A stretch of DNA of 64,000 nt from NCBI GenBank assembly GCA_047495785.1, contig JBLDXI010000074.1:186001-250000 (forward strand). Reading direction: 5' to 3'. The notes beneath the pieces are model-generated. The model was not told the DNA's origin. It saw nothing but the letters and a program-made list of their open reading frames with translations, and searched no databases. Both the position numbers and the translations under genes were made by a program. Below, in pieces: positions 5,497-64,000 of this stretch. The DNA is from Lepidodermella squamata. Lineage: Eukaryota; Animalia; Gastrotricha. Numbering within the stretch: position 1 is the first letter of the stretch; each line of letters starts with the position of its first letter.

Positions 5497-7185
5497 ATGA
5501 GTAGCCTGGAAATGTATCCTGCTTTCTACGGTAACTTCGACATCACGCATCGACTGATCACAGTCAAATCCTTGGCCAGCTGGGGGCTTTTTCCGAGGAA
5601 CTTCATACACGTGTATTACAAAGACACAGAACTTCTGGATATGAACCAGCGGCTTTGCGACATCGAATTCGTAAAAGACAGCAAGAATGTAGATGCTGAT
5701 TTACGAGAACATTTGAAAATTTCAACCGACATCGTGCTACTGGCTATACTGCCGAATCTTGGATTCGATTTGACCGATTTCAATATGCCTGCATCTACTT
5801 CAATCAGGGATTTAAAGTTGAAAATGGCGAAAAAACTGAACATTCACCCCGAAAACCGTTTGTGTCTATATGAAGGTGATGAATTCTTCAACAGACTCGA
5901 TGACAACCGCACGTTATTCTCCTACAAAAGCAAGGATAACAAGCTCAGCATTTCTGTGAAAATTTTCGAGCCGGACTTTTTCGAAATTTTCATCAAGATG
6001 CCTTCGAAGAAGCTACTACCAATGATGGTACACCGGACAGATTTTATCGCGAATGTTAAGGAACGAATCTATGACCATATTGGAATTCCTTCGCGTGAAG
6101 TGTTCGGAAGGATCAACTTGGAAATGAGAAGCGGAGAAGTCATCATGAAGGACAAGGACTTTTTATTTCAGTATAATATTGAACCTTTTATTGTGATAAC
6201 TTGTTCAATCGAAAAGCACGACCCGGTTGAAATTCAATACCTCCATCCTGGATTTCTTAAAAGATTCGTAATTCCGGACCTGCAACTTTCGGTGACAATT
6301 GGTGATCTACGAAGCAGAATAGCGGGATCTTTAACTCTGCCAGAAAAGACATTTCGCTTACATCTTGGTTCTCCAAATGGGAAATGGTTGAACGAAGACG
6401 AAGCTTGTACTTTGCTTGAATGCGGAATTTACAAACAATCTAGTCATATTATTGTCAATACCAACTGGGCTTTTATCATTTCGAGTCAAGACTTCGGCGA
6501 ATTTCTCATTCAACCCTCTGGCATCAAGCTCACGGTCGCTCGATTGAAGGCGGAAATCCAGCAACTAAAAGGCGTCACCGCCCGTAGTCAATCGCTGTTC
6601 TTCCAGGGCAAATCAATTGACTTGTCATCTGAGACTTCGGATGATTTGGCTGGAATAAGTCGACTGTCGACGATCGAATTGAAATTGAAGAAAACGGCCG
6701 CACAAAAACCGGTGAAAATTACGACTCGAGTCTGCCGAAAAATCGCTAAGGTCCAGGTTAGCAGCACGGCATATGATGAAGAAATTAAAAAAGGAATTTC
6801 GAAATATTGTCCCGATGTCGATAAGTTTAGCTGCTACCACTTCGGGACTAATTACCTTATTTTTTCGGCAGTGGAATCGCGTTTGACTCACAATGTCCAA
6901 ATCATGCTTGGGCCGAAACGAGCCGATCCTAAATCAAAGGATTCTGGTGATTATCGAATTCACGTTAAAACGATCACGCAGAAAAATTTCACGCTTTTCG
7001 TTGATGCTGACGAGCTGATTTTTGCTGTCAAGCAGAAAATTTGCGACGTTAACGATGTTCCACCTGAATATCAGAGGTTGACTATTGCGGGCGGTACGTA
7101 TCTATCATCGAATAAAAAGGTGGCTGATTATCCCATCGAGAACAAAAGCTGCGTGTATATGATCATGGTAGCTCGCGGATGCTAA
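5497..7185 (+). CDS. Multi-ubiquitin-like-domain protein, copy 1 (562 aa, ends VARGC)
   Basis: Repeated beta-grasp signatures (T/S-I-x-D-L-K-x-x-I...Q-x-L) and C-terminal Ub-like domain IHVKTIT...VPPEYQRLTIAG. Aligns over its full length with the other copies. Confidence 0.9.
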   Translation: MSSLEMYPAFYGNFDITHRLITVKSLASWGLFPRNFIHVYYKDTELLDMNQRLCDIEFVKDSKNVDADLREHLKISTDIVLLAILPNLGFDLTDFNMPASTSIRDLKLKMAKKLNIHPENRLCLYEGDEFFNRLDDNRTLFSYKSKDNKLSISVKIFEPDFFEIFIKMPSKKLLPMMVHRTDFIANVKERIYDHIGIPSREVFGRINLEMRSGEVIMKDKDFLFQYNIEPFIVITCSIEKHDPVEIQYLHPGFLKRFVIPDLQLSVTIGDLRSRIAGSLTLPEKTFRLHLGSPNGKWLNEDEACTLLECGIYKQSSHIIVNTNWAFIISSQDFGEFLIQPSGIKLTVARLKAEIQQLKGVTARSQSLFFQGKSIDLSSETSDDLAGISRLSTIELKLKKTAAQKPVKITTRVCRKIAKVQVSSTAYDEEIKKGISKYCPDVDKFSCYHFGTNYLIFSAVESRLTHNVQIMLGPKRADPKSKDSGDYRIHVKTITQKNFTLFVDADELIFAVKQKICDVNDVPPEYQRLTIAGGTYLSSNKKVADYPIENKSCVYMIMVARGC

Positions 7186-8025
7186 GTTGTGGCTCCTTTG
7201 CTACGATGCTGAACCACGGAACGATTTAGGCGGACAATTTTGATCTTAACCTGATTTTTTTGGCTAAATAAACTAAAAATTGCAATAGTGCTTGATTTTT
7301 CATGATCCTAGATGATTTTTCGCAGAAAAAAGTCATTTGGTAGTCATCATCTATCGGCATTTAGGTTACAACAAGACGTTTTTCAATGATCGGCCGATTG
7401 CGAATAAAATTACGTTGTGCGTCGTGACCTCGGCGCGGCGGTGAGGGTGTAATAAAGCCGATCGCGCACAAGCACGTTGTATGGAAAAATAACTAGCTCT
7501 AGTGTGCAACGAGAACTAAACATTTCAGAGCTGCAATTATTATTTTACCGAGTGATTCCTGTTTACGGGACAAGACTTGGGATTTTTCACCGCCAGTTAT
7601 TTTAACCCTTTAATCGTTGGTATGCCAGGTGCCAGGTTATTTTACTGAAGTCGAACTCGCCTTATTCGCCGATACTTAATTTGTCGTCTCTCTGAGTACG
7701 ATCGTGGTTTACTCATGCGAATCCGTAGATAATGCGAATAGTTCTTTCAACTTGTTTAACTTTTACTTTAATTTTTAATATTTTTACGCCGTGAACGCAG
7801 GCCGTCAACGACGTCAAGGTCATTTGCCACGCGAAATTTAATTTTCTGGAAAAATTTAAACGATTTGCCACCATTCAATCCTCGAATTACCACGAGATTG
7901 CATCTGAGGCATCTGGTGTCTGAGCGAATAATGACATTTTGACGAATTCAGCGAAAATCACCAGCACGGTTCGACTAGGACTGCCGTAAAAGAGATATTT
8001 TTTCATCTTTAGGCGAGACAGGCTA

Positions 8026-8075
8026 GTGAAAATGGTTACCGAATTCGGTTATTGCCCTCAAGCGCGAGAATTAGG
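8026..8075 (+). pseudogene. Relict N-terminus of a multi-UBL gene
   Basis: Reads VKMVTEFGYCPQAR, matching MRILIEFGYCPPAR of copy 4, downstream of a tttag acceptor-like site. Confidence 0.55.
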
Positions 8076-8291: not shown

Positions 8292-9943
8292 ATGAAAATC
8301 ATTGTTGAGTTCGGCATCTGCCCAGCCAAGGGGAACATCCGCCCGCTCGAGATAGAAAACTTCAATGAAAATAACAACTTATCCTTTCTTCGGTCATTAA
8401 TCGAATACGAGCGTGGAATCCCGATACAGCTGCAAAAGCTTTCATTTGAAGGCGAAACCTTGGAATCATGGCAAATCATCCGCTCTCTCCGAAAAAGTTC
8501 TGGAGAACCGATTCATTTCCACTGCGACGTCTTGATGACGTTTCTCGTGACCGCTGCTTGCGAAAATGTGAATTTATCTGATTTCGAAATTTCAACCTCG
8601 GCCACAGTTCAAGACCTTGAGGAATTGATCAAGAACAATTTGCCTCAGCCTGTTCGTGAGATTCAGCTCTTTCGCCAAGCAGATTTTTTCGAAGAACTTG
8701 TCAGCCATCGATCGATTGGTTGCTATGTAAATAGCCAAAATATGCTTCGGGTATCAGCGAAAATTTTCATCAGCAAAGACTACGTCAAAATTTTCATCGC
8801 TCTGCCGTCTGGAAAATTGATCCCGATGGTCGTCCATCCAACTGATTCCGTCGAAATGCTGAAAAATCGTATTCGAGACTATCTTGGTCTTCCGATTCGG
8901 TTTAAATTCGCCTTGAAAAATGGTTCGAAAATTCTGAAATCCAAAGATTTTCTCTGCTCAATCAGATTGAAGCCATTGCAAACGCTGAGAGTTATCATAG
9001 GCATTTCGACCATTTCTGCGTACCTCTGCCGAATTCAAGGAAGACTAAGCATATCAGCATTGGATTTTCGAAGACCATCGGTGATTTGAAGCGAAATATC
9101 AGTACAGCTACTTCTCTGCCATTCGGTTCATTCCGCCTTGTTCGTAAATTTCCGGTTGAAAAATGGCTGGATGATGATAACTTGAAGATTTTCGAAACTG
9201 GAGTTGACGGAAGCTTGGAAATTCGCGAAAATAACGCTCTCGTAATTACAAGCCGTGAATTTGACGATTTTTTCATCGAAACTGACGAAATTCCGCTAAC
9301 TGTTGGCGGTTTGAAAGAAAAAATCGAGAAAATCACAAAAATTTCGCCGCATCTTCAAAGTTTATTTTTCAATGAACAACGGCTGGATGATTTGGCCGAA
9401 GTCATTTCGATTCCGTTCATGTCAAAAATCGACTTGAGAATTAGCGGCCAACAATCAGTGAAAGTTACCGCCGATGTATTTCGTTTGGTAGCGAAAACTA
9501 GTTTATCGAAATCTTCAAATGCGAGGGAAGTGAAAGAAGTCATGAAACATTACCTGAAAAATTCCGATGCTCACTTATGCTGCTTTCATGGGCAAATTTT
9601 TAGCGACGATGAGCCTATTTTCAATGAAGATTTGATTGGTAAAATCAAGTTGCATGATGAAATTAGATTGCGAACCAGCCCGCCGCCTGGTTTTCCGTTC
9701 GATGAAGGCGACTTTCAAGTTCATATAAGAATGCTGACTGGTCAAACAAAGACTTTTCTCGTTGATCCAGCCGAGACGATTCTATCGTTGAAACAAAAAA
9801 TCGAGTTTTATTGTGGCATGGCAGTGGAGCACCAACGTCTTTCGTCAGCTTCACGGCTGTTGCTAGACGAACAATCGATCGCGAGCAGCAAAATTGAGAA
9901 TCAAAGCTACCTTGATCTGAATGGTAGATTAAGAGGTTGCTGA
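8292..9943 (+). pseudogene. Multi-UBL copy 2, frameshifted near 9000 (pseudogene or sequence error); ends GRLRGC
   Basis: ORF 8283-9089 covers domains 1-3. Homology (LPNSRK..TIGDLKRNI) continues in the frame of ORF 9086-9943 from about 9002. Confidence 0.85.
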
Positions 9944-11159: not shown

Positions 11160-12902
11160 ATGAGAATGAAAATCATCGTCGAATTCAGTTATTACCCTGG
11201 AGCGCCAGAAGCGTATTCCTCTGAGCCGACTTATTCACATCGTCCGGACTGGCCTAAAATGGTACCCCTCGAGGTGAACAATTTGACTCCATCGGACAAG
11301 GTCATCACGCTCCAATCAATCATCGAAAACAAAAAGGGAATTCCGCTGAAATTGCAGCAGCTTTTTTACTACGACAGATTGCTTCGATCGTGTGAAACTT
11401 TGGCTTTCATTAACTCGACTGAAGTTTCGAATGAGGTCCTCAATTTACGCTGCGAATCTTTGATTGCTTTCTTGGCTAAGGTTCAGCTGACTAAATTTGA
11501 TCTGGGTGGACTCGTCATGCCACTTTCGAGCTCGGTTAAAGACCTGAAAGACTCGGTCAAGAAAAAAATGAAACAACCGGTGTACGACATCGCAATTTAT
11601 CGAGGAAAGGAATTAGTGGAAGAGCTAGATGAAAATCGTTCGATTGGCTACTACAAAAATCGCGACTTCAGCCTGCAAATATCCGCCAAATTGTTTGTCT
11701 GCGATAACTGCTTCAAAATTTTTATCGAATTTCCGTCTGGACGATTGGTCCCAATGACTGTTCATCCGAGTGATTCCGTTCAAATGATTAAAGAACGAAT
11801 TCAGGGCTTTCCGGCCTATCCCCGCCAACATTTTTTCGACCTGAAAAGAGGGAGAACAATTTTGGATAATCGTGAGCTTCTATTATCGACTGATTTAAAG
11901 CCTTTTATGGCGCTGAAAATTGTTTTCGACGACGTGAAAGATTTCGAAATTTCATTGAAAATGCCGAATTCTCGGAAGAATTTCAAAATTCGCGAGGTTA
12001 AAATTTCGGAATCGATCGCTGATTTGAAGAAAAAAATCAGCGTTTCGACGTCAATGCCACCGAGCTCTTTTCGATTATTTCGAAAATTGCCGACTGAGGA
12101 GTGGCTAGTTGACGAGACTTTGACGATGTTCGAGTATGGAATCTACAGCCCGGATGAACAGCTAGAAATCCGGGATAACAATGCTTTCGTGATTTTGAGC
12201 CAAGAATTCGGAAATTTTTACATTCAACCTGCGGATCAGAGCTTGAAAATCGTTGATTTGAAGCGAAAAATCGAGGAAATCAAAGGAGTTGATGTCAATT
12301 TTCAATCTCTTTCTGTCGACGGAGAGTCAATAGATGGATTTTCTGGGAATTTAGCCTCTTGTGGCTTGATTGGCCGAATGTCGAAAATTGAGTTGAAAAT
12401 TCTGAACTCGGCTAAAATTGGGGTTCGAATTCTCCCTGGAGTCGCACGTTACGTCGGCAAAGTTTGCCTGTCTACTTTATCCAACATGAAAGAAGCTGAA
12501 AAATTGATGCGACCATACATGGAAAATCCTGATGTTAATGATTGTTTTTTCCGTGGCCGAACCGGATTCAATTTCCGCTATTTGAATTCACACGGTTTTC
12601 CGATTGAGCACAACGAGGAGCTTAGCTTTGTTCCTAGGAAGTTGCCGTCTCTTCCTCTGGACAAGGGAGACTTCCAAATACGAGTTAGAATGCTTAACGG
12701 AAGAGATGTGGTGCTTTTTGCTAATTACGGTGAATTGATTGATTCGCTGAGGGAAAAGTTGTACTACCTGGAAGGGATCCCGGTGGATCAAATTCGATTG
12801 ATTTATGCCGGGAAGCAGTTGGAAGATTCGCGAACCCTCTCTGATTATAACCTCAGAGGTGGCACTATTCTGCACCTGGTTCTTAGACTCAGCGGCTGCT
12901 GA
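11160..12902 (+). CDS. Multi-UBL copy 3 (580 aa, 7 UBL domains, ends LRLSGC)
   Basis: Last domain [35 protein letters not shown] closely matches ubiquitin/NEDD8. Confidence 0.93.
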
Positions 12903-14363: not shown

Positions 14364-16106
14364 ATGAGAATTTTAATTGAGTTCGGTTATTGCCCACCAG
14401 CAAGGCGTGGTCCAGTCTCGGAAAATGACAATCATTGTAGCTATCAAGAAACCGCCGAAGGACCTCCTGAGCTTGAAATAAAAAACTTGAAAAAATCGGA
14501 CCAAATCGTCACCCTCCAGTCGGTCATTTTTAACGAAAGGCGTATCCTGCCCGAGTTTCAACAAATTCTGTATGATGACCGATTGCTGCAGCCTGATCAA
14601 ACCATGGACGAAATTCAACCAGCTGAAGACTCTGCTCAGGAGGTTATCAACTTAACCTGCCAATCGCTGGTAGTTTTTCTTGCGATTGCGCCTTATCCGA
14701 AATTTCAAAACGATTTATCTGGACTGCCGGAAATGCCCGGTTCTACGTTGGTCCGAGACCTGAAAGAAGCGATCAGGAAACGATTGCCAGATCCGTCCAA
14801 GGAAATCAGCCTATTTCGGGGTAAGGGTTTTTTCGAAGAGCTGGATGAAAATCGAATGATTGGCTACTACAAAAATCGGGAAAATGAGCTGGAAATTTCA
14901 GCTAAACTGTTCATGAACCCCGATTACTTCAAGATTTTTCTTGAGCTTCCTTCGGAAAAATTGATTGGATTGTTTGTTCACCCGACCGATTCAATCGGAA
15001 TGACCAAAGATCGAATTAAAGATGCCTTCGGCATTTCAGGAAAAGTTGATTTCGGTCTAAAACATGGAGGGAAATTACTCGAAGATGACGACTTTCTGTT
15101 CTCTGTCAATTTGAAACCTTTCATGCTGCTGAAAGTTGTTCTCGATGAGCCTGGAAAAAGCTTCGAGATGACTATCAAAATGCCGAACTCGAGGAAGAAC
15201 TTCAAACTTCGCGATATCAAAATTTCGCAAACGATTGCTGACCTGAAAAAACGAATCAGCGCTGCTACTTCAATGCCTCCGAGTTCGTATCGCTTGATTA
15301 GAAAGTCGCCAACTGAAAAATGGTTAATCGATGATGTAATTACGCTGTTTGAGCATGGAATCTACAACCCGGTCGAGCAGATTGAAATACGGGACAATAA
15401 CGCGTTTTTCATTGTCAATGAAGATGTTGGCGAATTTTTCATCGAACCGGCGGATTTAAACATGAAAATTATCGATTTGCAGAAGAAAATTGAGGCGATC
15501 AAAGGCGTGCCGGTAAATGCTCAAAGTCTGTCTTTCAATGGCGAATCGATTGATAAGTTTCCTGGAGACCTGGCCTCTTTTGGCTTGATCGGCCGAATGG
15601 CGAAAATCGAGCTGAAAATTGTCGATATTCCTGTCAAAATTAGCGCTGGATCTGCCATTTTAGTGACTAAAGCTCGCCTATCACCTTCGTTTTCCAAATT
15701 TGAGTTCAATTGGGAAGTTCTGGAGCCATTTATTCAGATATCTGAACCTCACGATCTAATCTATGGCTTTGAAACTTTCTACAAACTCAACCAAAGTTGC
15801 TTTCGATTCGCCCATAATGACGAAATTCGTATCCGGCCAAGGCAACCGCCATCTGTTCCTGTAGATCAAGGCGGCTTGGGGCTTGCTGTGAAGTTGCAAG
15901 ATGGCCGAGTTCACAACGTTCGGGCAGATTACAATGACACGGTTCGGACGCTGATGGAGAAGCTGGCCTATGTTGAAGGGATTCCTGTCGACCACATTCG
16001 GCTGATTTTCGCCGGCAGGCTGCTGGAAGACCGGCAGACCCTTAATGAGTGTAACATTGTGAAAGGTTGTACGTTGCAATTGGTTGTCAGGTTACGCGGC
16101 TGTTGA
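14364..16106 (+). CDS. Multi-UBL copy 4 (580 aa, ends VRLRGC)
   Basis: Full-length paralog of copy 3; EGIPVDHIRLIFAGRLLED. Confidence 0.93.
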   Translation: MRILIEFGYCPPARRGPVSENDNHCSYQETAEGPPELEIKNLKKSDQIVTLQSVIFNERRILPEFQQILYDDRLLQPDQTMDEIQPAEDSAQEVINLTCQSLVVFLAIAPYPKFQNDLSGLPEMPGSTLVRDLKEAIRKRLPDPSKEISLFRGKGFFEELDENRMIGYYKNRENELEISAKLFMNPDYFKIFLELPSEKLIGLFVHPTDSIGMTKDRIKDAFGISGKVDFGLKHGGKLLEDDDFLFSVNLKPFMLLKVVLDEPGKSFEMTIKMPNSRKNFKLRDIKISQTIADLKKRISAATSMPPSSYRLIRKSPTEKWLIDDVITLFEHGIYNPVEQIEIRDNNAFFIVNEDVGEFFIEPADLNMKIIDLQKKIEAIKGVPVNAQSLSFNGESIDKFPGDLASFGLIGRMAKIELKIVDIPVKISAGSAILVTKARLSPSFSKFEFNWEVLEPFIQISEPHDLIYGFETFYKLNQSCFRFAHNDEIRIRPRQPPSVPVDQGGLGLAVKLQDGRVHNVRADYNDTVRTLMEKLAYVEGIPVDHIRLIFAGRLLEDRQTLNECNIVKGCTLQLVVRLRGC

Positions 16107-16800: not shown

Positions 16801-19800
16801 TTGATGAACAAAGAGTAAATCGAAAAAAGTTTAGTAGAAGATTTCTCATTTCCGGAAAGCTTACAAATTTGAAGAATAAATTCATGTGTTGCCTGGATTT
16901 TCTATGAAATTTGTTAGCTAATCTCGATTCCGGAATTATTCGCTTTAAGATTGAGAAATATTAATTTTAAATTATTTTGGCATCAATCTCTTTGTTTTTT
17001 AAGAATTAAATTTTAACTCGACGGAGAAACTCGGCGGCTAAACTCTGAATTGATTCCGAAAAACTTTCGGCTTTCGGAAAATTGACTATTTATTTGCGAA
17101 TTTATTTGTTCCAAATACCTTGCTCCACATTTTTGTTTCCAAAGTGATCTGATTTTAGTTATTAGCTTGCTCCTCAGCAACATGCAGTTATATAAACTTT
17201 GCGTTTTTTAGACCATCCTTTATTATAATGAGAATTATAATCGAGTTCGATTATTGCCCGCCAGCAAGGCGTGATCCATCCCTAGAATACGAAAGTAGTC
17301 TCAGTTATGCGGAAAGAGCCGCCGAATCTCCTCCTGCGCTCGAAATAACAAGCCTAACTAGCACGGACAAAGTCGTCACCCTTCAAGCGATGATCCAAAA
17401 TGAGAGAGAAGTTCCTATGGAATTTCAACAGTTATATTTTAATGATGAATTGCTTGAACCGGGTCAAACTTTCGGCGAAATTCTTCAAGCGGGAGATTCT
17501 CAGGAATGTTTCACGTTAATCACGTTAATTCACTGTGAATCCCGGGTTATATTTATAGCTATTCTGAAAATTTCGAAGAAAGTAGATTTGTCCGGGGTTG
17601 AAATGCCCGCTTCCGCCTTGGTCCGTGACTTGAAAAAAGCCGTCAGGAAAAGATTGCCAGATCCTTCGAAGGAAGTCAGCCTCTTTAAGGGCAAGGGGTT
17701 TGTCGAAGAGCTGGACGAAAATCGAACTATTGGCTACTACAAAAGTCGAGAAAACGAGCTGACTATTTCTGCGAAAATCGTCGATAATGAAAATTATTTC
17801 AAAATTTTCATCAAATTTCCGTCCGCATGCCGTCTGGCCCCAATGATCGTTCACCCAACGGATACAGTCGCTATGGTCAAAGACCGGATAAGGGACTTCT
17901 GCAGCCTTTCAGGCGAAGTCGATTTCGACTTGAAAAATCGATCGAAGATTCTTGAACCGAATGACTTTCTATTTTCAGTCAATTTGGCGCCACTAATGGT
18001 GCTGAATGTTGTTTTGAAACCTACCGAATGCTTCGAAATTACGCTGAAACTGCCGAATTCTCGAAAAAGTTTTAAACTTCGCGATATTCGGACCAGCCAA
18101 ACGGTTGCTGAATTGAAAGAAAAAATTCGCGTTGCAACTTCTATGCCGCCAAGCTCATATCGGCTGATTCGAACTAATCCGACTGAACAATGGCTCATAG
18201 CGGACCAAACTACGTTATCCGAATATGGGATTGTCAATCCAAGTGACCAACTGGCCCTTGTGGATAACAACGCTTTGTTGATTTCGAGCCAGGATTTCGG
18301 AGACTTCTTCGTCGAAGTGGCCGATTTGAACTTGAAAATTCCGGAGTTGAAAGCTAAAATCGAAAGAATTAAAGGCGTCCCGGTTAAATCTCAGTCGCTA
18401 TTTTTCAACGGTGAATCAATCGAAAAATTTCCTGGGGATTTGGCCTCCTTCGGTCTGATTGGTCGAATGTCGAAAATCGAGCTGAAAATCGTGGCTTCTT
18501 TCAATGTATTGTATTGTATTGTATTGTATTGTATTTTATTTTCCAAATTCAATCAAAAATAATTACAGAATTTAAGGTTAACAATCATTGAGGAAAATGG
18601 ATTAGAATACAAAGGGCAAGTTCTGCCACTTACATGTACCTACATTATAACATATTTTCATAGCGCGCAAAGTGGATAATGTTTACAGTATTGAGCTGCG
18701 AAGATGACTAGAAAGATCACAAGTCATAAGCTTATGTTTGAAAATAACAGAATTATTAGAAGATACTATATCGTTTGACAATTTATTCCAGATCGGAGCT
18801 AGTCGGTTTACAAATGAGAAGCGATATTGGTCAGTTCTACAAGTTTGTATAACTAGTTTGAAGGAATGATTAGAACGAGTGACGTTAGAATTAAATTTTA
18901 GCTTGTCAGAAAGATTACAGCGAACTTCATTTTTTATAATTTTGAACAGTAAGACCAGGTCAGCTCTCAAGCGTCGCAGTTCAAGAGATGGAATATGGAG
19001 CTGTTGTAGTCGTAAAGAGTATGAGGGTCGTGGATCAGATATTTTTCTACAGAATAGGCGACGAGTGAAGTAAGATTGAACTTTTTCGATTTTATTAATT
19101 AACGTTTTCGTGTAGGGAGACCAGATCGGGGACGCATAATCAAGAAGAGGTCGCACGTATACACAGTAGGCGCGAACTAGCGTAGCTTTATCGCGAGATT
19201 TGAAGGCACGAAAGATAAGGTTGATACGTTGCATCGATTTCTTTACTATAGAGTCAATATGGTCACAAAAAGAGAGACGATCGTCAATCAGGACCCCTAG
19301 GTCCCTGATGGAATTGACTTTACCAAGAGAGTGATCGCCAATTTTATATTCAGTTTTTGGATTATTTTTACCAAGATGTAAGCATGCACATTTCGAAACA
19401 GAGAGTTGAAGTTGCCAGCAGGAAGTCCAATCATAAACTCGATCGAGTGCACGATTCATTTCTATTGGACTAGCGTCATCATTCAAAAACATTACGTAGA
19501 GTTTACAGTCATCTGCGAATAAACGGATTTTAATGTTTCCCGGTAGATTCTCGTGAATGTCATTTATAAAAAGGAGGAAGAGAAGGGGCCCCAGGACAGA
19601 GCCCTGGGGAACCCCGCTAGTAACGTCGCATTTTTCACTCTTTTTCTTGTTGACAATAACGGACTGAGTTCGATCAAGCAAAAAATTTTCGATCCAACAC
19701 AAAGGTTTGCCGGAGATTCCATAAGATTTCAGCTTAGCAACGAGTTTTTTATGTGAAACCGTGTCTATTACACTACATATTGGGTAGTTTACCAGATTCG

Positions 19801-21014
19801 AAGGAAAGTTTTAAGAGAGAAGTTATCGGCATGGCGAGTTCGTTGCTTAGTTCTTTATAGAACGCTGTCGGAAGTCCATCAGGGCAGATCGCATAGGAAT
19901 TTTTTAGTTCATTTATAGCACAACGCACCTTTTTTTCAGTAATACTAATAGAGGTAAAAACTTGATCGCCATTGACACGTTTAGGGAGAGGAGGAGTTAC
20001 GTTATTATCTTTTGTGAAGACGGATGAGAATTGTTCATTCAGAACGGTAGCTTTCGAAAGGTCGTCAAGTACATAATTTCCATGCGAGTTTAGTAATGGA
20101 GGGATATCAACACGATCTTTAATTTGAGAGTTTACATAGTTGTAAAAATCAGAGAGTTTATTAGAAGAGATTACTTCATGTTCCTTTTGACGGTAGAATT
20201 TTTTCAAGGCAGAGTCATAAAGAGTACTGAGGCGTTTGTAGTTCGAGATAAGTTGTGCGTTCTGTTTGTTTTTCTTGAGTTTGCGCCACGCATTGGCTTT
20301 TTTTGATTCAAGCCGGCGAATATTTTTAGGATAGCGACTCATTCTTTTTTCGCCAGACGATTTAGGCACAAACTCGTCGACCAACTTCATAAGTGTATCA
20401 ATGAAAAATTTCCAAGCCAAGTCGACGTCAGAGCATTTGTCAAGAATCGTGGAGAAGTCAACTTTCGCTAAAGCTGTTTTCAGACCGTTGTAATCACATT
20501 TACGAAAGTTGTAGTTGCAGAGAGCGTTAGTATTTGAGGCAATGTTTGTAGCATTTTCAGAAGAAGGGAGGCTAATTTTGAAGTTGAGAGATAGATGATC
20601 GCTTTTCCCGATGGGGGAGTCAGATTTAACGTCGAAAACACGATGGGAAGCATTAGTAGCAATAATGTCTAATAAGTTATCTCCCCGAGTGGGAAACGAG
20701 ACGAGTTGAGTTAACGAATTTTCAGTGCAAAAATCGGAGAAATTTGTGGTAAGTGAGTTTTCATTTTCAGAGACGTAGATTCGATTCCAATTCATTTCAG
20801 GCAGATTAAGATCTCCTATCATCACGGTAGGCCATGCACAATCAACAAGTTCGTTACAGCATTGAATAAGTTTCTTAAGGTAGTAAGCGTCGTTGTAAGG
20901 CGGACGGTAAAAACCTATGATGCGCACTTTTTCTTTCTCGTACACCACATCAACGCAACATATTTCCACATCATTGAATGCATCTTTTATCGGAACGTTT
21001 ATCACATGGTAATC

Positions 21015-21823: not shown

Positions 21824-22099
21824 ATGGTAATCAGATTTTACAAATATAGCAACACCACCACCTCTAGCAGGTCTGTCGTTTCTTGTTACGTGATAAAATT
21901 TCGCACCCAACATAGCGTTGGTAATTGAGCTATTAAGCCACGTTTCACAAATAACAATTATGTCATAGAGTGATTTTTCAAGAACACGTCTAAGCAGATG
22001 AGTTTTATTCTTGACACTACGAGCGTTAGCATAGAAGCAATGTAGATATTTTGAGATAATATTACGAAGTTTTTTATTTACAGAACTTGCCGAAAGGCC

Positions 22100-46953: not shown

Positions 46954-47019
46954 TTGAATAAACTCTAAAAACCAAGAGAATGTAACTGATTAATTGATTT
47001 ATTGATTTATTGAATTTTT

Positions 47020-47527: not shown

Positions 47528-47952
47528 CAGTCAGTTTTAAAGAGTTCGAAAATCTTTGAAGCTCCATCGAAAATTTCCGTCAAAGCCTAACCTTAATACA
47601 GCGTGTCCCAGAAGTAGCGCAACTATTTTTTTATTTGGAAAAGTTTTGTAGGAAATTCAACTAAGATCCTGCTCAAGGCTAGGGCTGCTTTCCAAATTTT
47701 TTGTAGATGTGCCGCAGATCTGATTTAGGAATTTCAAACGAGAGAGTGGCTCCTGTCTATCGTAAAATCCTACAATTTGCTTTGATTTTACTTGAATTAT
47801 TGCTCAATCAATTATTGCTGCTATCGAGTTGACTCCCCGGTTGCATTTATTTCCTCTCTGGTGAATCAATTTTCTCAATTCGAGTGAAAAATTCAATAAA
47901 TCAATAAATCAATTAATCAGTTACATTCTCTTGGTTTTTAGAGTTTATTCAA

Positions 47953-49356
47953 ATGAATATCCCTATAGTTCTTCGATGCAATATCCCAAGACCGGATGTA
48001 ACCTTCGAATGTTCCCTACCATATTCAACTATTACCTTCGCTAATTTAAAGTCGATAATTCAAGAAAAGCTTGAAACTTCACTTGATCTTCGTCCGTTTG
48101 TGCTGTTCGGTGAAGAATTAGATGACAATCGAACAATCGGTTTTTACGCTTGCGAGGAAGGAAAACTCACTTTGATGGCGACAATTCTGGCTAAAGATTT
48201 TTTCAAAATCTCGGTCCTTATGCCGTCTGGCCAACTGGGCCAATTCGCTGTTCATCCGACAGATTATGTTCGGGATCTGAAGAAATCAATTCTTGGATCC
48301 GTTGGCATTCGCTCGTTGGAAGACGTCAAACTCGTCCTGAGAAATGGATCAGTTATCATGAATGATTTTGACACCTTATCGAGTTATCAAACTAAAGCCT
48401 CGAGCGTTCTTTCTTGCGACATTAAAGAGCCCAAGTTGTTCAAAATAACTTTTCAGCATCCTTATTTTCGGAAAAGATTCACAATTCGCGATGTCTTCAT
48501 TACGGACAAAATCGGGGATATTAAGCGGAAAATTATGAGTGCAACTTCTCTCTCAACTGACACTTATCGATTGTACTCGGAGAAAGGGTGGTTGAAAGAT
48601 GATTGCCGAACTTTATTTGAATGTGGAATTTACGATCCTTCAAAGCAAATGCGAATAGCCGATAACAATGCTTTCGTCATTGCAAGCGAGGATTTCGGCG
48701 AATTTTTCATTGAACCTGCGGATTTTTCCCTCGGCGTAGCCGGTTTAAAGTTGAAGATTGAAGAGCTGAAGGGCGTGCTATGTGAAGATCAGCTTCTGTT
48801 TTTCAATGGTAAACCGTTGACTTATTTCGACAAAGAATTGATTGAAATTTTCAAATTATGTCGCTTATCGAAAATTCAGTTGAAACTCACTAAAAATCCG
48901 AGTCGAGGCGTGCAAATTTCTGTTATATTTCGGATGTTAGCAAAAATTCGAGTCGGCAATAAAGCTTCGGAGCAGGATCTGAAAAATGCAATATATGAAG
49001 TTTTTCCACTCGCTTACGAGTTCAGCTGCTACGGAAGTGTGACGAAGAGGTTAATTCAATCTGACCCCGAGTCGAAAATTGCGAATCACGGCGAAATCTT
49101 GCTCGCGGCGCTTTATAAAGGTGACTATCAAGTTTTTGTTCGAGGTGTAAGTGGGAAAATTCTAACTTATTGGGTGAATCATGGCGAATTGGTTGATACG
49201 CTGAAGCAGAAAATCGAATGGTTAGAGGGCATTCCGGCGAAGAAGCAAAGATTGATCTTTTCCGGCTTCCAGCTTGAAGCGGGTAAAACCTTGGAAAGCT
49301 ACGGGATATGCAAAGAGTCGACAGTTTCACTTGTTCTGCGATTGGTTGGTTGTTGA
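47953..49356 (+). CDS. Multi-UBL copy 8b (467 aa, six-domain form, ends LRLVGC)
   Basis: Close paralog of copy 7, with shared upstream and downstream flanks. Confidence 0.9.
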
Positions 49357-51567
49357 ATATATGGAGACTTTCAACTTTGTCTAATTTTTTGATGATTGCA
49401 AAATAAATTGGAATTAAATTTAAGTAAACAGGTTTCCAAGCTATTTTTTAGTTTCATATTCGTTAGGAATTTTTATACTCAACTTACTACTTCGATTGAG
49501 TATATATACTCATATTTGGTAAGTTTTTTGGGTTCTGTCTCAATCCAGGCCTTGTCAACCTTAGCTAATCTAACCATATCATAGCCACATTTTCAAATTT
49601 CCGAAATGCCACACTCCACTCAGTTTTCAATTAAATTTGATGAAACTTGGGGAAATTATACATTGAAACACGGGGAATCTTATGATATCAAACTCGTCCG
49701 TATCGGCTGCGCGACCGGGCCGCAAAAACGAAAACAAAAATCTTGCGTGGCTACTGACCCAGACCCCGTTGACTAGGCATGCCTCAATCGATGCCATCCG
49801 CTTTTGAAGAATTTTCGAGCTTCGAGAATTCGGTAAAGTGTGTTCGTTGAATTTCGTAGTAACAACTCATCAGAAAAAGAATGTTGTCATCTTGAGTTTT
49901 TACTCATAACAAATAGTTAGAAATCGGGCGCATCATGACTCATCATGACGACCAAAAGTAAAAATTTTGACTAGGTTTTACCAAGCCTGCTCAAAATAAT
50001 CAAGCATTCATGTAATACATTATATTGTAAATCAGGTGTTGCAATAGGAATTAGGAATCGAGGACAAGGATGAAATGATTGGTGTTTTAATGCACAATAG
50101 CAATCACAACTTTTAGTCGAATTCTTAACCCAATTTAGATGTCAATGCTGAACTCGGATTTGCGTATCGGGAAGAAATTATCATACTCGCGCTCGATAAA
50201 ATCTCTGATAGCCATCGGTACATCGGTTCCATTCGTTGTTCGACAAGCAAAGCTGAACTGAGGCATGTTTGATTTTAACCACCTGAAACGCGGGTGCTGT
50301 TGGAAATTTGGCAAGCCAAGTGCTTGGCGTAGATAGTTACATTCGTGCTGTGCCATGCAAAGCCCAATTCCAACTCTACCCCAGAAAAAAATAAAACTTG
50401 GCGATTCGCCCGCAAAAAGGTGAAATTCACTCGTAAAATTCAGGATTAGGAGTGTGGATAAAAATATTGCGAGACTAGTTGATCAGGCTACATGCGGTGA
50501 ATCCGCCGTGTCGCAATAAAATCTCTATCGCAGAAAGAATTGAAACATGCTAGGAAATCACCAAGCGTTTTTACCAACCATATATTTGCTCGGATCTGAT
50601 CCTAACGAAACTTTCAGGAAAGTTTTCCACATTCTTGGCTTATCAATTGCCATCGGGTTTTTAGGGTTTTTCTCCGATAAATTTTTAATTTCTCCGGTAA
50701 ATTGGCTGATAAAGATTCCCCCAATAGGTTTAATTTAAAAAACAAATAAGTTTAATTTCCAAAAAAACATTTCCCAAGTTATCAAACGCGCCCCGTTTTA
50801 TTTGTCTATTTTTGAAAATTGAGATAAGGAATATTCGAAACATTTTGCCTTGCTTGTTATGTGATCAGTTCAATTTACTGAACGCAAAAGTAATTGGTGC
50901 CAACTTGAATTAGAAAAAATTAGACACCATCTCACACGTTTATCAAAACAGAATTTCCGGCTAGCGAATGGCTTTTGGTAGAAAATATCGATAAGAGACA
51001 CGTTTTCGCACAGAGACTATTATTCCTTATCGAGCAGTTTGCAAAAAACCATCTAGTGAATCACGACGTCATGTGCGAAAATTGTGATTCATGCTACAAA
51101 AAATAGCTATCAAGCCCGTGCCATTAAATTAATTGCTGAAATTGGGAAGATTTTAATTTAAAAAAATTCCAGAAAATTAAAGCGAAGCCGGCCGGAAATG
51201 CGGATTAGATCCCTGATTAGCGTGTCACATCTCTCTTTTTTATTTTTCTATGTATCGGTTGCTCTCAATACGTTTTTATCGTTTCTGAATTATGACGCAT
51301 CAACGTATAGCTTTATATTGATCTCGTAAAATTCTAAAAAGCCTTTTTAGGGGCTTTATTATTATTATTCTAAAAAGCCTTTTTAGAATTTTACGAGATC
51401 AATAAAGCTACGTTGATGTTTCATGTTTCGAGGAATAAAGATTGCCATTTTATTTGTGTTTGCGATTTGTGATCACTATTTAGCAACTATCACCGCGATT
51501 CAAATCTTGAATCAATAAAATTTACAGCTTTTAAAAGCGGTTTTTACATTACCTGCTGCTTTGAATA

Positions 51568-52559: not shown

Positions 52560-54257
52560 ATGAAATTTCAGTCCACTGTCATCTCTCGCGCCTGCGGCCT
52601 ACATGATAGCGTGGAAATAAACGGTTTCGAACTCACGGACCGTGTCATTACAGTCAAGTCTTTGATCGAAGCGGAAATAGGAATTCCGAAAGAATTGATC
52701 CAGCTTTACTATGGCAATGCAGAGCTACTCGATCCGAACCAGCGCCTCTGCGACATCGAAAAGAGCAAAGTTAAGGAAGAAGGTGTATGTGCTAGACTCC
52801 GCTTTGATACTAAAATCGTGATTCTTGCGATTTTGCCGAATTCCGAGTTCAAATTCCCTGATTTCAACGTCGTTGCATCGATGACGATTGCCGATTTGAA
52901 GAAATCAATTGCAGCAAAAGTGAGCATCAAGCCAAACCATCAGCTGTGTCTCTTTCGAGGCGACGATTTTTTCGACCAATTGGACGACCATCGTACGGTT
53001 GGTTATTACCAAAACGGAGAAAATCGCCTGACAATTTCTTCAAAAATTTTCGATGCCGAATTCTATGAAATTTCTATCCGCCTGCCGTCCAACAAATTAC
53101 TACCTATGCTTGTTCACAAAACAGACCAGGCAGAAAATGTGAAAGAGCGCATTTTCGATCATGTTGGAATTAGCATTCCAAATGCTTTGACTGCGATCGA
53201 TTTGGAGCTGAAAAAAGTATCAGTGGCTTTGAAGAACAAGGATTTCCTGGGCTATTACAATGTCGAACCCTACTGCGTGCTAACTGCTGCACTCAAAGAT
53301 TATAAGACTGTTGATATCACGTTCAAGCACCCGGATCTGCCAAAAATTTTCAAAATTCCAGATGTTCGAATTTCCGATAGAATTGGCGATTTGAAGGAAA
53401 AAATTGCAACTGCTACTTCGATGCCTATCACCTCGTATCGATTGCATTTCGAGTCTCCGAATGGCAAATGGCTCAATGATGACAGTCTCACTTTGTTCGA
53501 ATGTGGAATCCACAACCCGGCGACTCAAATTTACATCGCTGATAACAATGCTTTGATCATTTCTAGTGAAGATTTCGGCGATTTTTTGATCGAACCCGCC
53601 GATTTGAGCCTCAAAATTGCTGATTTGAAATCGAAAATTTCGGAATTGAAAGGCGTTCCAAGCCGTAATCAATTGCTTTTTCTGGACAAGCGACCGCTGG
53701 ACAATTTCCCTGGTACTTTGGCCGCTTTCGGTCAAATCGGTCGGATGACAATTATCAAGCTGAAAAAGTCGACTGAAAATAGCGCTGTCAAGATTTCAGC
53801 CGGGATCGGTCGGACTATTGCGAAGGTTCAAATTGACAGTTATGCTAGCGCGAAAGGGATAGAAAATGAATTGGCGAAGTATTTCCCGTTTTTCAGCGAT
53901 TTCGCGTGTTACGAATTCACGAAAAATCTGCCTATTTTTTCAGTTTCTGAGTCTGATGTTTGGAATAACACGCAGGTGAGGTTGGGGCCGAAACTGCAGA
54001 AACCCAGCCCGATGGACAAGGGTGACTACAAAATATTCGTCAAGAAGCCGACAGGGAAAACGCTGTCTTTCTACGTCAATTCTGGCGAGGTGATTTATTC
54101 GGTGAAGGAGAAAATTCAGGCTATTGACGGCATCCCGACTCATGAGCAGCGGTTGGTTTTCGGTGGTCAACAGCTGGAATCTAGCAAGACGGTGGATGAG
54201 TGTGGCATTGCCAACGAGAGTTGCATTCATTTGACTTTGAGACTGCGTGGCTGTTGA
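52560..54257 (+). CDS. Multi-UBL copy 9 (565 aa from ATG 52560, ends LRLRGC)
   Basis: IFVKKPTGKT..DGIPTHEQRLVFGGQQLE..IHLTLRLRGC. Confidence 0.93.
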   Translation: MKFQSTVISRACGLHDSVEINGFELTDRVITVKSLIEAEIGIPKELIQLYYGNAELLDPNQRLCDIEKSKVKEEGVCARLRFDTKIVILAILPNSEFKFPDFNVVASMTIADLKKSIAAKVSIKPNHQLCLFRGDDFFDQLDDHRTVGYYQNGENRLTISSKIFDAEFYEISIRLPSNKLLPMLVHKTDQAENVKERIFDHVGISIPNALTAIDLELKKVSVALKNKDFLGYYNVEPYCVLTAALKDYKTVDITFKHPDLPKIFKIPDVRISDRIGDLKEKIATATSMPITSYRLHFESPNGKWLNDDSLTLFECGIHNPATQIYIADNNALIISSEDFGDFLIEPADLSLKIADLKSKISELKGVPSRNQLLFLDKRPLDNFPGTLAAFGQIGRMTIIKLKKSTENSAVKISAGIGRTIAKVQIDSYASAKGIENELAKYFPFFSDFACYEFTKNLPIFSVSESDVWNNTQVRLGPKLQKPSPMDKGDYKIFVKKPTGKTLSFYVNSGEVIYSVKEKIQAIDGIPTHEQRLVFGGQQLESSKTVDECGIANESCIHLTLRLRGC

Positions 54258-60032: not shown

Positions 60033-61736
60033 ATGAAAGTAAGCGGGAGTTTTAACAGCCACGCCTACTACAGACTCAACTTCGAAATTGAGGGTTTTGA
60101 GATCACAGATAAATTGAGTACTATCAAATCTTTGATAGAAGCCCAGACAAAAGTTCCGCAAGATTTGTTCGACCTTTATTTCCGGTACGAAAAGTTACTT
60201 GACTTGAACCAGCGGCTGTGCGACATTCCCGAAATTCAACGCAGCAAAACTAAGGAAGCAGATTTTTGTGATGGGCTTGGCTTATCGGCTCAAATCGCAA
60301 TCCTTGCTATTTTACCGAGTCCAGAGTTCGAATTCCCGGATTTTGAAGTTTCAGCAACAACTTCAATCAGCGATTTGAAGAACAGGATCTCAGGAATTAT
60401 TGGAATTGAACAAGGAAATCAGCTGTGTCTTTTTCGAGGTGGCGATTTTTTCGATCAGTTGGACGAAAATCGTACGGTTGGCTTCTACAAAAATGCAAAT
60501 AACTCTCTTAAAATTTCGGCGAAAATTTTCGATGCTGAATTTTTCGAAATTGCCATCGAATTGCCTTCAAACAAATTGCTGGCTATGTTAGTCCACCGAA
60601 CGGACCAAGTCGAGAATGTCAAGGAACGGATTTTCGATCACGTCGGAATTCGGCTGCCGGATGCGATTGATAAAATTAAATTGCAATTGAAACATGGATC
60701 TGCGACTCTAAATGTTAGAGAATTTCTGGCCTGCCTCGACATCGAACCTAATTGCCTGATTACTGCTACCTTAGAAGAGTGTGAGCCTGTTGAATTCAGC
60801 TTCAAGCACCCGGATCTTCAAAAAATCTTCAAAATTCGGGATGTTAAGATTTCGGATAAAATTGGCGACTTGAAAAGGAAAATTGCGACTGCGACGTCGA
60901 TGCCTATCACCTCGTATCGATTGCATTTCGATTCTTCGAATGGCAAATGGCTCAACGATGACAATCTCTCTTTGTTTGAATGCGGAATTCACGACCCGTC
61001 GACTCAAATTTACATCGCTGATAACAATGCTTTGATCATTTCCAGTGAAGATTTCGGCGATTTTTTGATAAAACCAGCCGATTCCAGCCTCACTGTGGCT
61101 GATTTGAAGTCTAAAATCGAGGAAATTAAACGCGTTCCAAGCCGCGACCAATCGCTTTTTGTGGGCAAAGTTTCGATTGATGATCTTCCGGAATCTTTCG
61201 TTCGAATCAACCGAATGTCGATTATCACGCTGAAATTGAAGAAAAAATCATCTAACAATTTTCCTGTGAAGATTTCAGCTGGCGTCGGTCGAACTATTGC
61301 CAAGGTCAAACTCGACAGCAATGCCTCGGAGCAAGGCGTAAAAGATGGAATATCGAAATATTACCCTGCGGTCAACAATTTCAGTTGTTATCGTTTCGCG
61401 ACTAAACGGCTGATTTTCTCCGTTGAAGAGTCATATCTGAGGAATAACACGCAGGTTATGTTGGGGCCGAAACGTCCAAAGGCGAGTCCGATGAATAATG
61501 GTGAATACGTGATCTTCGTCAAGACGCTCACAGCGAAAACGTTGACGTTCTGCGTCGATTCTGGCGAGCTGATTTATTCGTTGAAGGAGAAAATTCTGGC
61601 TATTGACGGCATTCCGACGGAACAGCAGCGGTTGATACTTAGTGGTCGGCAGTTGGAACCTGATGCGACGGTGAAAGAAAGTGGAATTGTCAACGAAACT
61701 TGCCTGTTTTTAGTTCTGAGACTCCGTGGCTGCTGA
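60033..61736 (+). CDS. Multi-UBL copy 10 (567 aa from ATG 60033, ends LRLRGC)
   Basis: IFVKTLTAKT..DGIPTEQQRLILSGRQLE..LVLRLRGC. Confidence 0.93.
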   Translation: MKVSGSFNSHAYYRLNFEIEGFEITDKLSTIKSLIEAQTKVPQDLFDLYFRYEKLLDLNQRLCDIPEIQRSKTKEADFCDGLGLSAQIAILAILPSPEFEFPDFEVSATTSISDLKNRISGIIGIEQGNQLCLFRGGDFFDQLDENRTVGFYKNANNSLKISAKIFDAEFFEIAIELPSNKLLAMLVHRTDQVENVKERIFDHVGIRLPDAIDKIKLQLKHGSATLNVREFLACLDIEPNCLITATLEECEPVEFSFKHPDLQKIFKIRDVKISDKIGDLKRKIATATSMPITSYRLHFDSSNGKWLNDDNLSLFECGIHDPSTQIYIADNNALIISSEDFGDFLIKPADSSLTVADLKSKIEEIKRVPSRDQSLFVGKVSIDDLPESFVRINRMSIITLKLKKKSSNNFPVKISAGVGRTIAKVKLDSNASEQGVKDGISKYYPAVNNFSCYRFATKRLIFSVEESYLRNNTQVMLGPKRPKASPMNNGEYVIFVKTLTAKTLTFCVDSGELIYSLKEKILAIDGIPTEQQRLILSGRQLEPDATVKESGIVNETCLFLVLRLRGC

Positions 61737-63571
61737 AACACAACACATCCCTGAAATTAGAACAAGTAAAGAATTTGTGTTCGAATTTCTAAAATTTTTA
61801 AAATTTTTCGAATAATTTTCTTGCTCAACTTTCGAATTCGAATACTTTGAATACATTTTATCTGATTTTAACCTCTCGTTCATACCCTGCCAGTGATGCC
61901 TTGAACTCTGAAATACTTCGTTTTGGCTCAAATTTACGAGTTGATTTGTAATAAAAATGGCGAGATGAATCGGCATCTTTTTCTGTTCTCGGCAAGTAAT
62001 CGGCTGCTACACTTTCGCTTTAGTGTTTTTCTTTAGCTTGAGTCTTGAGTATTAAGCCCACTATCAGAAAATGTAGGGGTCGCAAGAGCTACACGACTCA
62101 GATTTTCTTGTACAGAACTAACAAATATCATCATAAAAATTGTCAGCCAGGGGCCGCCAGCGTCGACTGAAAAGTCAATTTTTATTCACTTCCTTCGCAT
62201 TTTCCTGGTTGAAACTGATTTTTCGTCTTTTAATACCAAGAAGTAATATCAACAGCTCCGACAGAACACGGGTGGAAATGCGTGTAATGCATGATGTTAA
62301 TAATAACCATAACAGCAATAATAATGGTCCATTATTGCTTGGCGAGTGTGTGTGGCGAGAAAATGCGAGGACCGCGAAACGCGAACAGACAGACGTTAAT
62401 TGCCTAGAAGGCGTTATGGAAGCGTGCCTCTCGCATTTGCTTATAAATCATGACAACAGTTTATCAGGAATTTGCAATTTTCCTCAAAATAATCCCGATT
62501 TTCCTTTTTGATGCCATCTATCATGCTAGTTAATTAGGTTTAATGGACAGGCATTCTCGTGCGAATCAAGATTCAGGTTTTAAAAAAGGCAACCGCGCGA
62601 TGAGGAGGCGAAACATGAGGCTGGGCTAAGATGCGAAAACTAATTCAATATTCCGGCCCATTGCCCGGAATCAATCGGACGAAAGCCATCATGTGGCGTT
62701 AAGTGTTAAGTGTTAAATGGGCCTCGAATTGAAAGTATTCAACCCGGAAGCGCAGAATTTCGCGAACGCCTCGGATATCGAACCTTCATTTCCCGACGAA
62801 CTTATCCAATTTATAGGTTTCGTAAATGGAGAGCAAGACTCGTCCGCTAGATATGAAGGTGCCATGACAGTTTGGATTGCACCATTGTGTACTACCTACC
62901 ATCTGATAGAGCAGATCACAAATTTTAATCCATGAAAATTGCAGCCTAAACCCCGACCCTCTTTGGTGATGTGAAGAATCAAAGTTTTGCCAACTTGAAA
63001 ATCGACAAATTTTCGCGCATCAATATCCCCTGTTTGTAGCACCTCCTGTGAAACAAAAATAAGCAGTTTCTAGGTCACGGATAATAATTGGGAATTAAAA
63101 AATCCTTCTTAAAAAAACTCGCCGACTTTTTGCAGATAATTTTAGCATTGACTTTCGTCTCTGATTAATCTGATCTCTATAGTGGAACCATTAAATCCAC
63201 AATTTCCTGATTGGTCCAGATTCTTGAAATCAGATTGGTTGGCTCATAAAGCAAGTGTCTCACACCATTTTTTCACGTTCACGCTTCTCTAGAGATGCTT
63301 CTTTTCTAAAAGTAGCAGCCATTAAAAAAATTGCGATTTAACTGGTTTCACTAGGTTAATCTCAAAATCGGCTTTCTTACGGATTTCGAGCAAAATCTCA
63401 TCTATTCACTGCAAACTATAGTTGGGGCTTCGAGTCTAATAATTTTCAATTCTGCATGGATTGAAATACCTGAATCGATAATTTTAGCGGTTTTTTACAA
63501 CATCTGCTGCTTTCGCTAATTTTTTGTTTTTTTGTAGGATTTATTCCATTAACTTCAATCGCTGAATACCC

Positions 63572-64000
63572 ATGAAATTTCAGTCCACTTACATATGTCG
63601 CCCGTGCGGTGAGCATGCTAGCGTCGAAATCGACGGTTTCGAACTCACAGACCGTGTGATTACAGTCAAATCTTTGATCGAAGCGGAAATAGGAATTCCG
63701 AAAGAATTGATCCAGCTTTACTATGGTGATACCGAGCTACTCGATCCCAACCAGCGACTATGCGACATCAAAGGGAGCAAAATTAACGAGAACCCTTGCG
63801 CTAAACTCAGCTTTCTCGACATCGATAGGAGCAACATTAATGAGAAACCCGGACTCAGCTTTAGAACTCAAATCGCAATTCTTGCCATTTTGCCGAATTC
63901 CGACTTCAAACTCCCGGATTTCGACGTCGTTGCATCGATGACGATTGCCGATCTGAAGAAATCAATTGCAGGAAAAATGACTATCAAGCCACAGCATCAG
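63572..64000 (+). CDS. Multi-UBL copy 11, 5' part (runs off window; absent from ORF track)
   Basis: Open frame MKFQSTYICRPCGEHASVEIDGFELTDRVITVKSLIEAEIGIPKELIQLYYG..., close paralog of copy 9. Confidence 0.9.
   Translation, partial: MKFQSTYICRPCGEHASVEIDGFELTDRVITVKSLIEAEIGIPKELIQLYYGDTELLDPNQRLCDIKGSKINENPCAKLSFLDIDRSNINEKPGLSFRTQIAILAILPNSDFKLPDFDVVASMTIADLKKSIAGKMTIKPQHQ

Follow-up and report, generated by a model that had tools for sequence, protein, structure and literature searches.

In a 64,000-nucleotide stretch of the genome of the gastrotrich Lepidodermella squamata (GenBank assembly GCA_047495785.1, contig JBLDXI010000074.1, positions 186,001 to 250,000 of the forward strand; hereinafter, the window), we examined a cluster of tandemly duplicated paralogous genes, each intact copy of which encodes a string of six or seven ubiquitin-fold units that ends, at the position corresponding to Gly76 of ubiquitin, with a cysteine immediately followed by a stop codon. 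On the strength of the sequences, a structural model and analogies with characterised proteins, we tentatively propose, at a probability of about 0.3, that these proteins are uncleavable look-alikes of linear ubiquitin chains, the terminal thiol of which would form a disulfide with the cysteines of partner proteins or with catalytic cysteines. What makes the family worthy of attention is the combination of an invariant Cys76 and an apparently enzyme-docking tail on a chain that resembles linear polyubiquitin, maintained in about ten functional copies. To our knowledge, all eukaryotic ubiquitin-like modifiers are activated via a C-terminal glycine, with UBL3 being the one reported thiol-based exception, and we see a modest chance that the family described here represents a new mode of attachment.

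The Gly-Cys terminus

All 13 C-termini visible in the window consist of a cysteine followed by a stop codon, exactly as they had been listed in the initial annotation of this DNA, namely, ARGC, LRGC (seven times), LSGC, LRSC, MAGC and LVGC (twice). In the nine intact copies, which are 30-48% identical to one another, both Gly75 and Cys76 are invariant; among all 13 termini, the glycine is present in 12, the exception (LRSC) being a decayed fragment at 34065-34412, the sole copy in which Gly75 is lost. The cysteine is encoded by TGC in six termini and by TGT in seven, and Gly75 is encoded by GGA, GGT or GGC, with codon switches inside subfamilies (copy I versus copy J, and copy B versus copy C). 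Because TGC and TGT interchange within subfamilies without any change of the amino acid, against about 5.6 changes at an average site of the tree, the sequences support the earlier contention that selection acts on the terminal cysteine itself. The initial annotation overlooked that, in the intact copies, Gly75 is as invariant as the cysteine.

Within the last unit (unit 7), nine of the 78 alignment columns are invariant across the eight distinct intact proteins (copies G and H encode the same protein), and these nine include the final glycine and cysteine. The unit retains R42, I44, G47, R72, L73 and G75, and drifts at K48, K63, L8 and H68. In ubiquitin, R42, I44, G47, R72 and L73 are contacts for the enzymes that grip the tail, that is, the activating enzyme E1, the deubiquitinases (DUBs), and the E2 and E3 enzymes that hold the donor ubiquitin; K48 and K63 are the lysines on which chains are built, and L8 and H68 are part of the receptor patch. 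The C-terminal glycine or exposable Gly-Gly of conjugatable (type I) modifiers is absent from all 13 termini, and, with position 76 occupied by cysteine, these proteins have no access to the canonical, Gly76-dependent E1 route. A CAAX box is absent as well, the cysteine being the final residue and its carboxylate free.

Domain architecture and fold

Each of the proteins is a head-to-tail array of ubiquitin-fold units encoded without an intron in the coding region; copies F, G and H do not contain unit 1 and thus consist of six units. The Pfam ubiquitin profile (PF00240) matches two to four stretches per protein and detects the last unit with E values of 1e-31 to 1e-48. In a phmmer comparison with the PDB, residues 478-554/555 of copy D are colinear with residues 1-75/76 of ubiquitin, and it is this ungapped alignment that places the terminal cysteine at ubiquitin position 76. 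Comparison unit by unit bore out the initial claim that only the last unit is strongly ubiquitin-like: in unit 7, 29-46 of the 76 residues (38-60%) are identical to ubiquitin, compared to 8-24 residues in units 1-5, and no sequence similarity to ubiquitin was detectable for unit 6.

An AlphaFold2 model of copy D, computed from an alignment of eight members, comprises seven consecutive beta-grasp-like units with almost no linkers (predicted local distance difference test score, pLDDT, 80.6; predicted template modelling score, pTM, 0.65). The best PDB matches of this model in a Foldseek search are linear tetra-, tri- and di-ubiquitin, the tail of USP7 that consists of five ubiquitin-like (UBL) domains (HUBL), and ISG15. 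The beta-beta-alpha-beta-beta-beta fold is clear in the model for units 1-5 and 7. Unit 6 has the expected order of elements in the full model, with a pLDDT of only 55-78, and reached a pLDDT of 63 when folded alone, too low for a fold search; it is probably a degenerate beta-grasp. The initial annotation counted six or seven beta-grasp units, one of which, unit 6, is a low-confidence fold. The last three residues of the model have a pLDDT below 50, which suggests an exposed, flexible C-terminal tail. The assertion that the chain contains no internal GG is accurate for the unit ends, where no such dipeptide was found, but not for the interior of a few domains, in which GG dipeptides do occur. 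There are no RGG junctions, so the chain is not cuttable into monomers by ubiquitin-processing proteases.

The similarity of the last unit to ubiquitin, together with the architecture, indicates that the family probably descends from ubiquitin, with a polyubiquitin precursor as the probable ancestor. Like the polyubiquitin precursors of the UBB/UBC/UBI4 type, the proteins of this family combine head-to-tail units encoded in one coding exon with an odd final residue; in the precursors, the odd or extra residue is in some cases a cysteine. However, the units of polyubiquitin all end in RGG and are cut out, whereas the units of the family end without GG; furthermore, only 5-30% of the residues of units 1-6 are still identical to ubiquitin, and the last unit carries a cysteine at position 76. 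Strings of at least five divergent ubiquitin-like folds in one chain are found also in the HUBL region of USP7 and in other multi-UBL arrays, but there they either serve as regulatory domains inside larger enzymes or end in unrelated residues.

Evolution of the paralogs

Pairwise Nei-Gojobori estimates of the ratio of nonsynonymous to synonymous substitution rates (dN/dS) among the paralogs are in the range of 0.17-0.42, with the synonymous divergence (dS) mostly above 0.8. The pair F-H shows a dN/dS of 0.42 at a dS of 0.33, the pair I-J 0.29 at a dS of 0.87, and the deeper pairs 0.17-0.24, with dS from 1.7 to about 3 or saturated. When dN/dS was estimated by domain, as had been suggested with the initial annotation, the pairwise values were below 1 in every domain common to all copies, revealing purifying selection in all shared units. 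The selection is strongest in units 4-5 (dN/dS 0.07-0.38; mean paralog identity 51-52%) and weakest in units 1 and 6, so that conservation along the protein peaks in units 4-5 and not in the last unit. The maximum-likelihood tree, with a total length of about 5.6 substitutions per average site, contains three well-supported subfamilies, namely, (D, B, C, E), (F, G/H) and (A, I, J); copy K resembles copy I.

Given these dS and dN/dS values, the paralogs are, as far as can be judged from the sequences, old, maintained genes under purifying selection, with some ongoing birth, represented by a palindromic duplication, and some ongoing death, represented by the five broken copies. The rapid turnover that had been postulated for the family is thus seen in these broken copies and in the one palindromic duplicate, which is 99.97% identical to its counterpart, but does not describe most of the paralogs, which are old and have dN/dS below 1 in the shared domains.

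Of the public runs, only the DNA run X1 contains this sequence; its Logan contigs cover the region (37600-42300) as an allele or strain with a divergence of 1-4% across the genes, which indicates high heterozygosity or a different strain. Within copy D, 17 synonymous and 16 nonsynonymous substitutions separate the X1 sequence from the window, counts that are consistent with constraint, and there are two homopolymer indels that are probably errors in the contig. In the second organism of the same study (run X2), nothing similar was found at 80% identity or higher, a canonical ubiquitin fragment excepted.

Search for relatives

A word-indexed search of 5.8 billion proteins, with copy D alone and with the family profile, retrieved nothing but surface proteins of bacteria that contain a ubiquitin domain. 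With a profile of units 1-6, HMMER retrieved 2344 proteins at E ≤0.001 from a full scan of 1.84 billion cluster representatives; polyubiquitin fusions and various multi-UBL proteins are the best matches, and an RGC end is absent from the best 150 of the 2344. The ESM Atlas returned generic ubiquitin clusters only, a scan of the JGI metagenomes produced no match, and in the literature that we searched, multi-UBL proteins with a Gly-Cys end are not described, nor is a natural protein with an end of the G76C type. The suggestion that the family is undescribed is thus in accord with the protein, metagenome and literature searches alike. The host lineage is poorly sampled, because the product of a neighbouring gene, N-acyl-phosphatidylethanolamine phospholipase D (NAPE-PLD), shares no more than 49% identity with any protein in the databases; missing orthologues are therefore weak evidence of a true restriction of the family to this lineage.

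Possible functions of the terminal thiol

Under the interpretation that we favour, the last domain would dock on ubiquitin-handling proteins in the manner of ubiquitin itself and, in doing so, would put the thiol where the Gly76 carbonyl of ubiquitin meets the catalytic cysteine of an E1, an E2, a HECT/RBR E3 or a DUB. A reversible, redox-dependent disulfide would then form between the terminal cysteine and the catalytic cysteine, and would either tether the whole chain-like protein to its partner, as is the case with UBL3, or occupy and trap the enzyme; units 4-5, the best conserved ones, would carry a family-specific binding function. Because the tail-reading residues are retained and the Gly-Cys end is predicted to be flexible, the tail may still enter the ubiquitin-tail-binding site. 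The chemical premises of this proposal, already invoked in the initial annotation, are documented: the engineered ubiquitin G76C forms disulfides with the active-site cysteines of E2 enzymes, mimicking the thioester (PMC4734694), and UBL3 modifies its targets by disulfide via C-terminal cysteines (PMC6158211). The G76C form carries the identical substitution at the identical position but is a laboratory reagent. UBL3/MUB, likewise, is a ubiquitin-fold protein with covalent, disulfide-mediated attachment through C-terminal cysteines but, unlike the proteins described here, consists of a single domain, possesses a CAAX prenylation box, in which the cysteines are followed by three residues, and has no ubiquitin-like LRLRG tail; its sequence shows no relationship to theirs apart from the fold.

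Several considerations weigh against the disulfide proposal. Disulfides are short-lived in the reducing cytosol, and no signal peptide was seen in the family proteins. A disulfide role accounts for the cysteine, but only weakly for the equally invariant Gly75. Docking in the manner of ubiquitin is not assured, because the I44 patch is only partly kept, with L8 and H68 varying. Furthermore, the searches described above yielded no orthologue from another species that would attest to long-term conservation of Gly-Cys, look-ups of the exact proteins of copies A, B, C, D, F, H, I and J gave no match, and a run search returned no RNA run.

The invariant Gly75 and the kept R72 and L73 would be readily accommodated if the cysteine were a precursor cap, such that a protease removes it and exposes Gly75, and a lineage-specific E1 and E2 conjugate the whole chain to lysines in the manner of ISG15 and FAT10. 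One extra residue is common in polyubiquitin precursors, and this residue is sometimes a cysteine (P0090 ends in RGGC). ISG15, which is among the Foldseek matches, and FAT10 are uncleaved tandem UBL domains that act as one unit, but they are vertebrate-specific and consist of two domains rather than six or seven, end in (LR)GG, and are E1-activated (by UBA7 and UBA6, respectively). Such capping seems somewhat unlikely, considering that the cap residues of polyubiquitin vary (Q, I, A, S, C, Y, F and N among the matches), whereas the cysteine of the family is invariant across saturated divergence, and that, with the ungapped alignment to ubiquitin, the resulting tail would be one residue shorter than that of ubiquitin. 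Moreover, the cleavage site of canonical DUBs follows position 76, not position 75. The peak of conservation in units 4-5, as opposed to the last unit, would fit a non-covalent scaffold that binds ubiquitin receptors, the proteasome or specific partners of units 4-5, and in which Gly-Cys is retained to meet some minor need, such as a conjugation block, stability or a C-terminal recognition motif; indeed, many GG-less multi-UBL proteins exist, and these end in varied residues. We consider a purely non-covalent role unlikely: any non-glycine residue blocks conjugation, yet every terminus has the cysteine and only the decayed fragment is devoid of the glycine. Conceivably, the terminal cysteine could be S-acylated and thereby tether the look-alike chain to membranes. 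The basic RLRGC tail that precedes and includes the terminal cysteine, with its predicted flexibility, is compatible with such an anchor, which would be a functional analogue of the prenylated MUB/UBL3, ubiquitin-fold proteins that are lipid-anchored via C-terminal cysteines (PMC6158211 and general knowledge). However, no CAAX, CC or CXC motif is present, the cysteine being last, no DHHC gene was found in the cluster by the Pfam analysis of the window open reading frames (ORFs), and a membrane anchor would leave the invariant Gly75 and the kept R42, R72 and L73 unexplained, so it appears quite unlikely.

The sole reading that needs all three invariant features, that is, the glycine, the cysteine and the immediate stop, is a latent thioester, whereby the Gly-Cys-COOH end would undergo an N-to-S acyl shift, probably assisted by an enzyme or a partner, and the S-acyl intermediate would be taken by a thiol (an E2 or E3 cysteine, or glutathione) or by an amine. 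With the free cysteine released, the chain would be activated at Gly75 without E1 or ATP, and the cysteine would behave as a "mini-intein" of one residue. The autoprocessing of hedgehog proteins and inteins, and the ciliate genes in which ubiquitin-like domains are combined with BIL domains (BUBL genes), act at Gly-Cys junctions by such a shift and are parallels to this reading only; they need, however, a Hint/BIL domain after the cysteine, whereas the cysteine of the family is the last residue. No trace of a Hint/BIL domain was found 3' of the cysteine, where the intergenic gaps shrink to about 120 bp in places and the downstream frames are unconserved. We know of no catalyst for a C-terminal acyl shift of this kind. 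In synthetic practice, a single C-terminal cysteine, best after glycine, starts an N-to-S acyl shift, which a free carboxylate accelerates and by which cysteine is released and a thioester formed; without a catalyst, however, the reaction requires one to two days at 45-60 °C and acidic pH with thiol in high concentration (PMC3277902, PMC4016753), and so is far too slow physiologically. Both the shift and the resulting activation at Gly75 therefore strike us as very doubtful, although, if true, they would amount to a new way to activate a ubiquitin-like modifier in an animal.

The C-terminus itself could differ from the one described above if the stop codon were recoded. The stop codon is TGA in 12 of the 13 copies, copy A having TAA, compared to one of the five other ORFs of the window (mostly TAA or TAG), and TGA could in principle encode selenocysteine (a Gly-Cys-Sec end), be read through, or be a sense codon in a variant code. 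A Gly-Cys-TGA end resembles the C-terminus of thioredoxin reductase. Nevertheless, recoding is extremely improbable: no selenocysteine insertion sequence (SECIS) element was found at the Rfam gathering scores or at E values up to 10, the frames 3' of TGA are unrelated between the copies (3-33 codons), and a purine directly follows TGA in 11 of the 12 TGA copies, a context of efficient termination. We rejected selenocysteine and read-through on the grounds of the missing SECIS, the unconserved downstream peptides and the TAA of copy A, and a variant code because the family ORFs span 1.4-1.7 kb without an in-frame TGA. The preference for TGA persists despite the saturated synonymous sites, with recoding rejected as its cause.

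To return to the chain look-alike with a terminal thiol, if the thiol serves attachment, trapping or self-activation, the family would be a naturally evolved counterpart of the ubiquitin G76C made by chemists and a new branch of ubiquitin-like signalling. If the thiol is unused, the family would still be a clear-cut instance of the conversion of a polyubiquitin gene into a fixed multi-domain protein.

The gene cluster

The ORF listing and a tblastn search with one member show that the cluster extends from 5.5 kb to the end of the window; the G+C content of the genome is 37-49%. With copy D as the query, tblastn delineated 14 family loci, and a 15th begins at 63572, in agreement with the at least 14 copies or fragments reported initially. 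Of these 15 loci, nine are intact ORFs of 467-580 amino acids, five are broken, and one continues past the end of the window (Table 1).

Table 1. Members of the ubiquitin-like family and the associated palindrome in the window
Feature	Coordinates	Strand	Description
Copy A	5497-7185	+	Intact, 562 aa, 7 units; ends ARGC-TAA
Copy Bp	8292-9943	+	Pseudogene, frameshift between 8996 and 9011; ends LRGC-TGA
Copy B	11160-12902	+	Intact, 580 aa; ends LSGC-TGA
Copy C	14364-16106	+	Intact, 580 aa; ends LRGC-TGA
Copy E	17228-18508	+	Broken, units 1-5 only, truncated by LINE insertion
Last-unit fragment, isolated	22955-23251	+	Ends LRGC-TGA
Last-unit fragment, decayed	34065-34412	+	Ends LRSC-TGA; 88% DNA identity to 22955-23265
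Copy Y	37718-38354	+	Frameshifted fragment, units 5-7 (first four domains gone); ends LRGC-TGA
Copy D	38471-40138	+	Intact, 555 aa, 7 units; last unit 46/76 identical to ubiquitin
Copy F	40639-42075	+	Intact, 478 aa, 6 units (without unit 1); ends MAGC-TGA
Copy G	45550-46953	-	Intact, 467 aa, 6 units; ends LVGC-TGA; left arm of palindrome
Copy H	47953-49356	+	Intact, protein identical to G; right arm of palindrome
Copy I	52560-54257	+	Intact, 565 aa; ends LRGC-TGA
Copy J	60033-61736	+	Intact, 567 aa; ends LRGC-TGA
Copy K	63572-64000	+	I-like N-terminal part, frame still open at window end
Palindrome	43510-51396		Arms 43510-47020 and 47886-51396, 3.5 kb, 99.97% identical; G and H head to head

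The palindrome may have arisen by a very recent inverted duplication, or may be an artefact of the assembly. Its arms differ by one mismatch in 3511 bp, and within the 866-bp spacer there is an inverted repeat of 209 bp (47020-47228 / 47319-47527). The outer ends of the arms are microRNA-like hairpins (43504-43588 and 51318-51402; sub-threshold Rfam matches).

The long interspersed nuclear element (LINE) inserted in copy E spans 18683-22768 on the minus strand and consists of endonuclease and reverse transcriptase ORFs (18683-21131) and a coiled-coil, ORF1-like ORF (22100-22768). It is adjoined by a 311-bp piece of a last unit (22955-23265), the coding part of which is possibly the displaced tail of copy E. 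Because an 88% identical twin of this piece is located at 34116-34426, the piece may have moved together with the LINE.

In most copies, a pyrimidine-rich tract ending in AG, typically TTTTTAG, is located 11-59 nt 5' of the ATG, which suggests a splice acceptor for a 5' leader, via either an intron in the untranslated region or trans-splicing. Copies Y, D and F are on the same strand with only about 120-500 bp between them, a spacing that would suit an operon-like arrangement. We rejected hidden upstream coding exons, given the in-frame stops 0-54 nt 5' of each ATG, as well as an extra 3' exon reached via a splice donor at the ORF end, given that no GT-donor position is common to the copies.

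Neighbouring genes

Pfam searches with ten further intergenic ORFs of the window gave no match. Just 5' of copies Y and D, there is an orphan ORF (36364-37407, plus strand, 347 aa) that starts with ATG and has no Pfam match. An ORF located mid-cluster (28553-30541, plus strand, 662 aa), with internal DNA repeats, consists almost entirely of ankyrin repeats (16 Ank matches), and no domain other than Ank was found in it. The NAPE-PLD exon or ORF is located at 32587-33420 (plus strand), and its nearest homologs are from molluscs (gastropods) and vertebrates. A GC-richer stretch at 2437-3524 contains three long overlapping ORFs on both strands, and the ORF at 2502-3509 has at its end part of an HSP20/alpha-crystallin domain, the remainder of which probably lies past an intron. 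Just 5' of the first family copy, we identified a full-length U3 small nucleolar RNA gene (4170-4397, plus strand; Rfam RF00012, 96 bits, E 6e-20).

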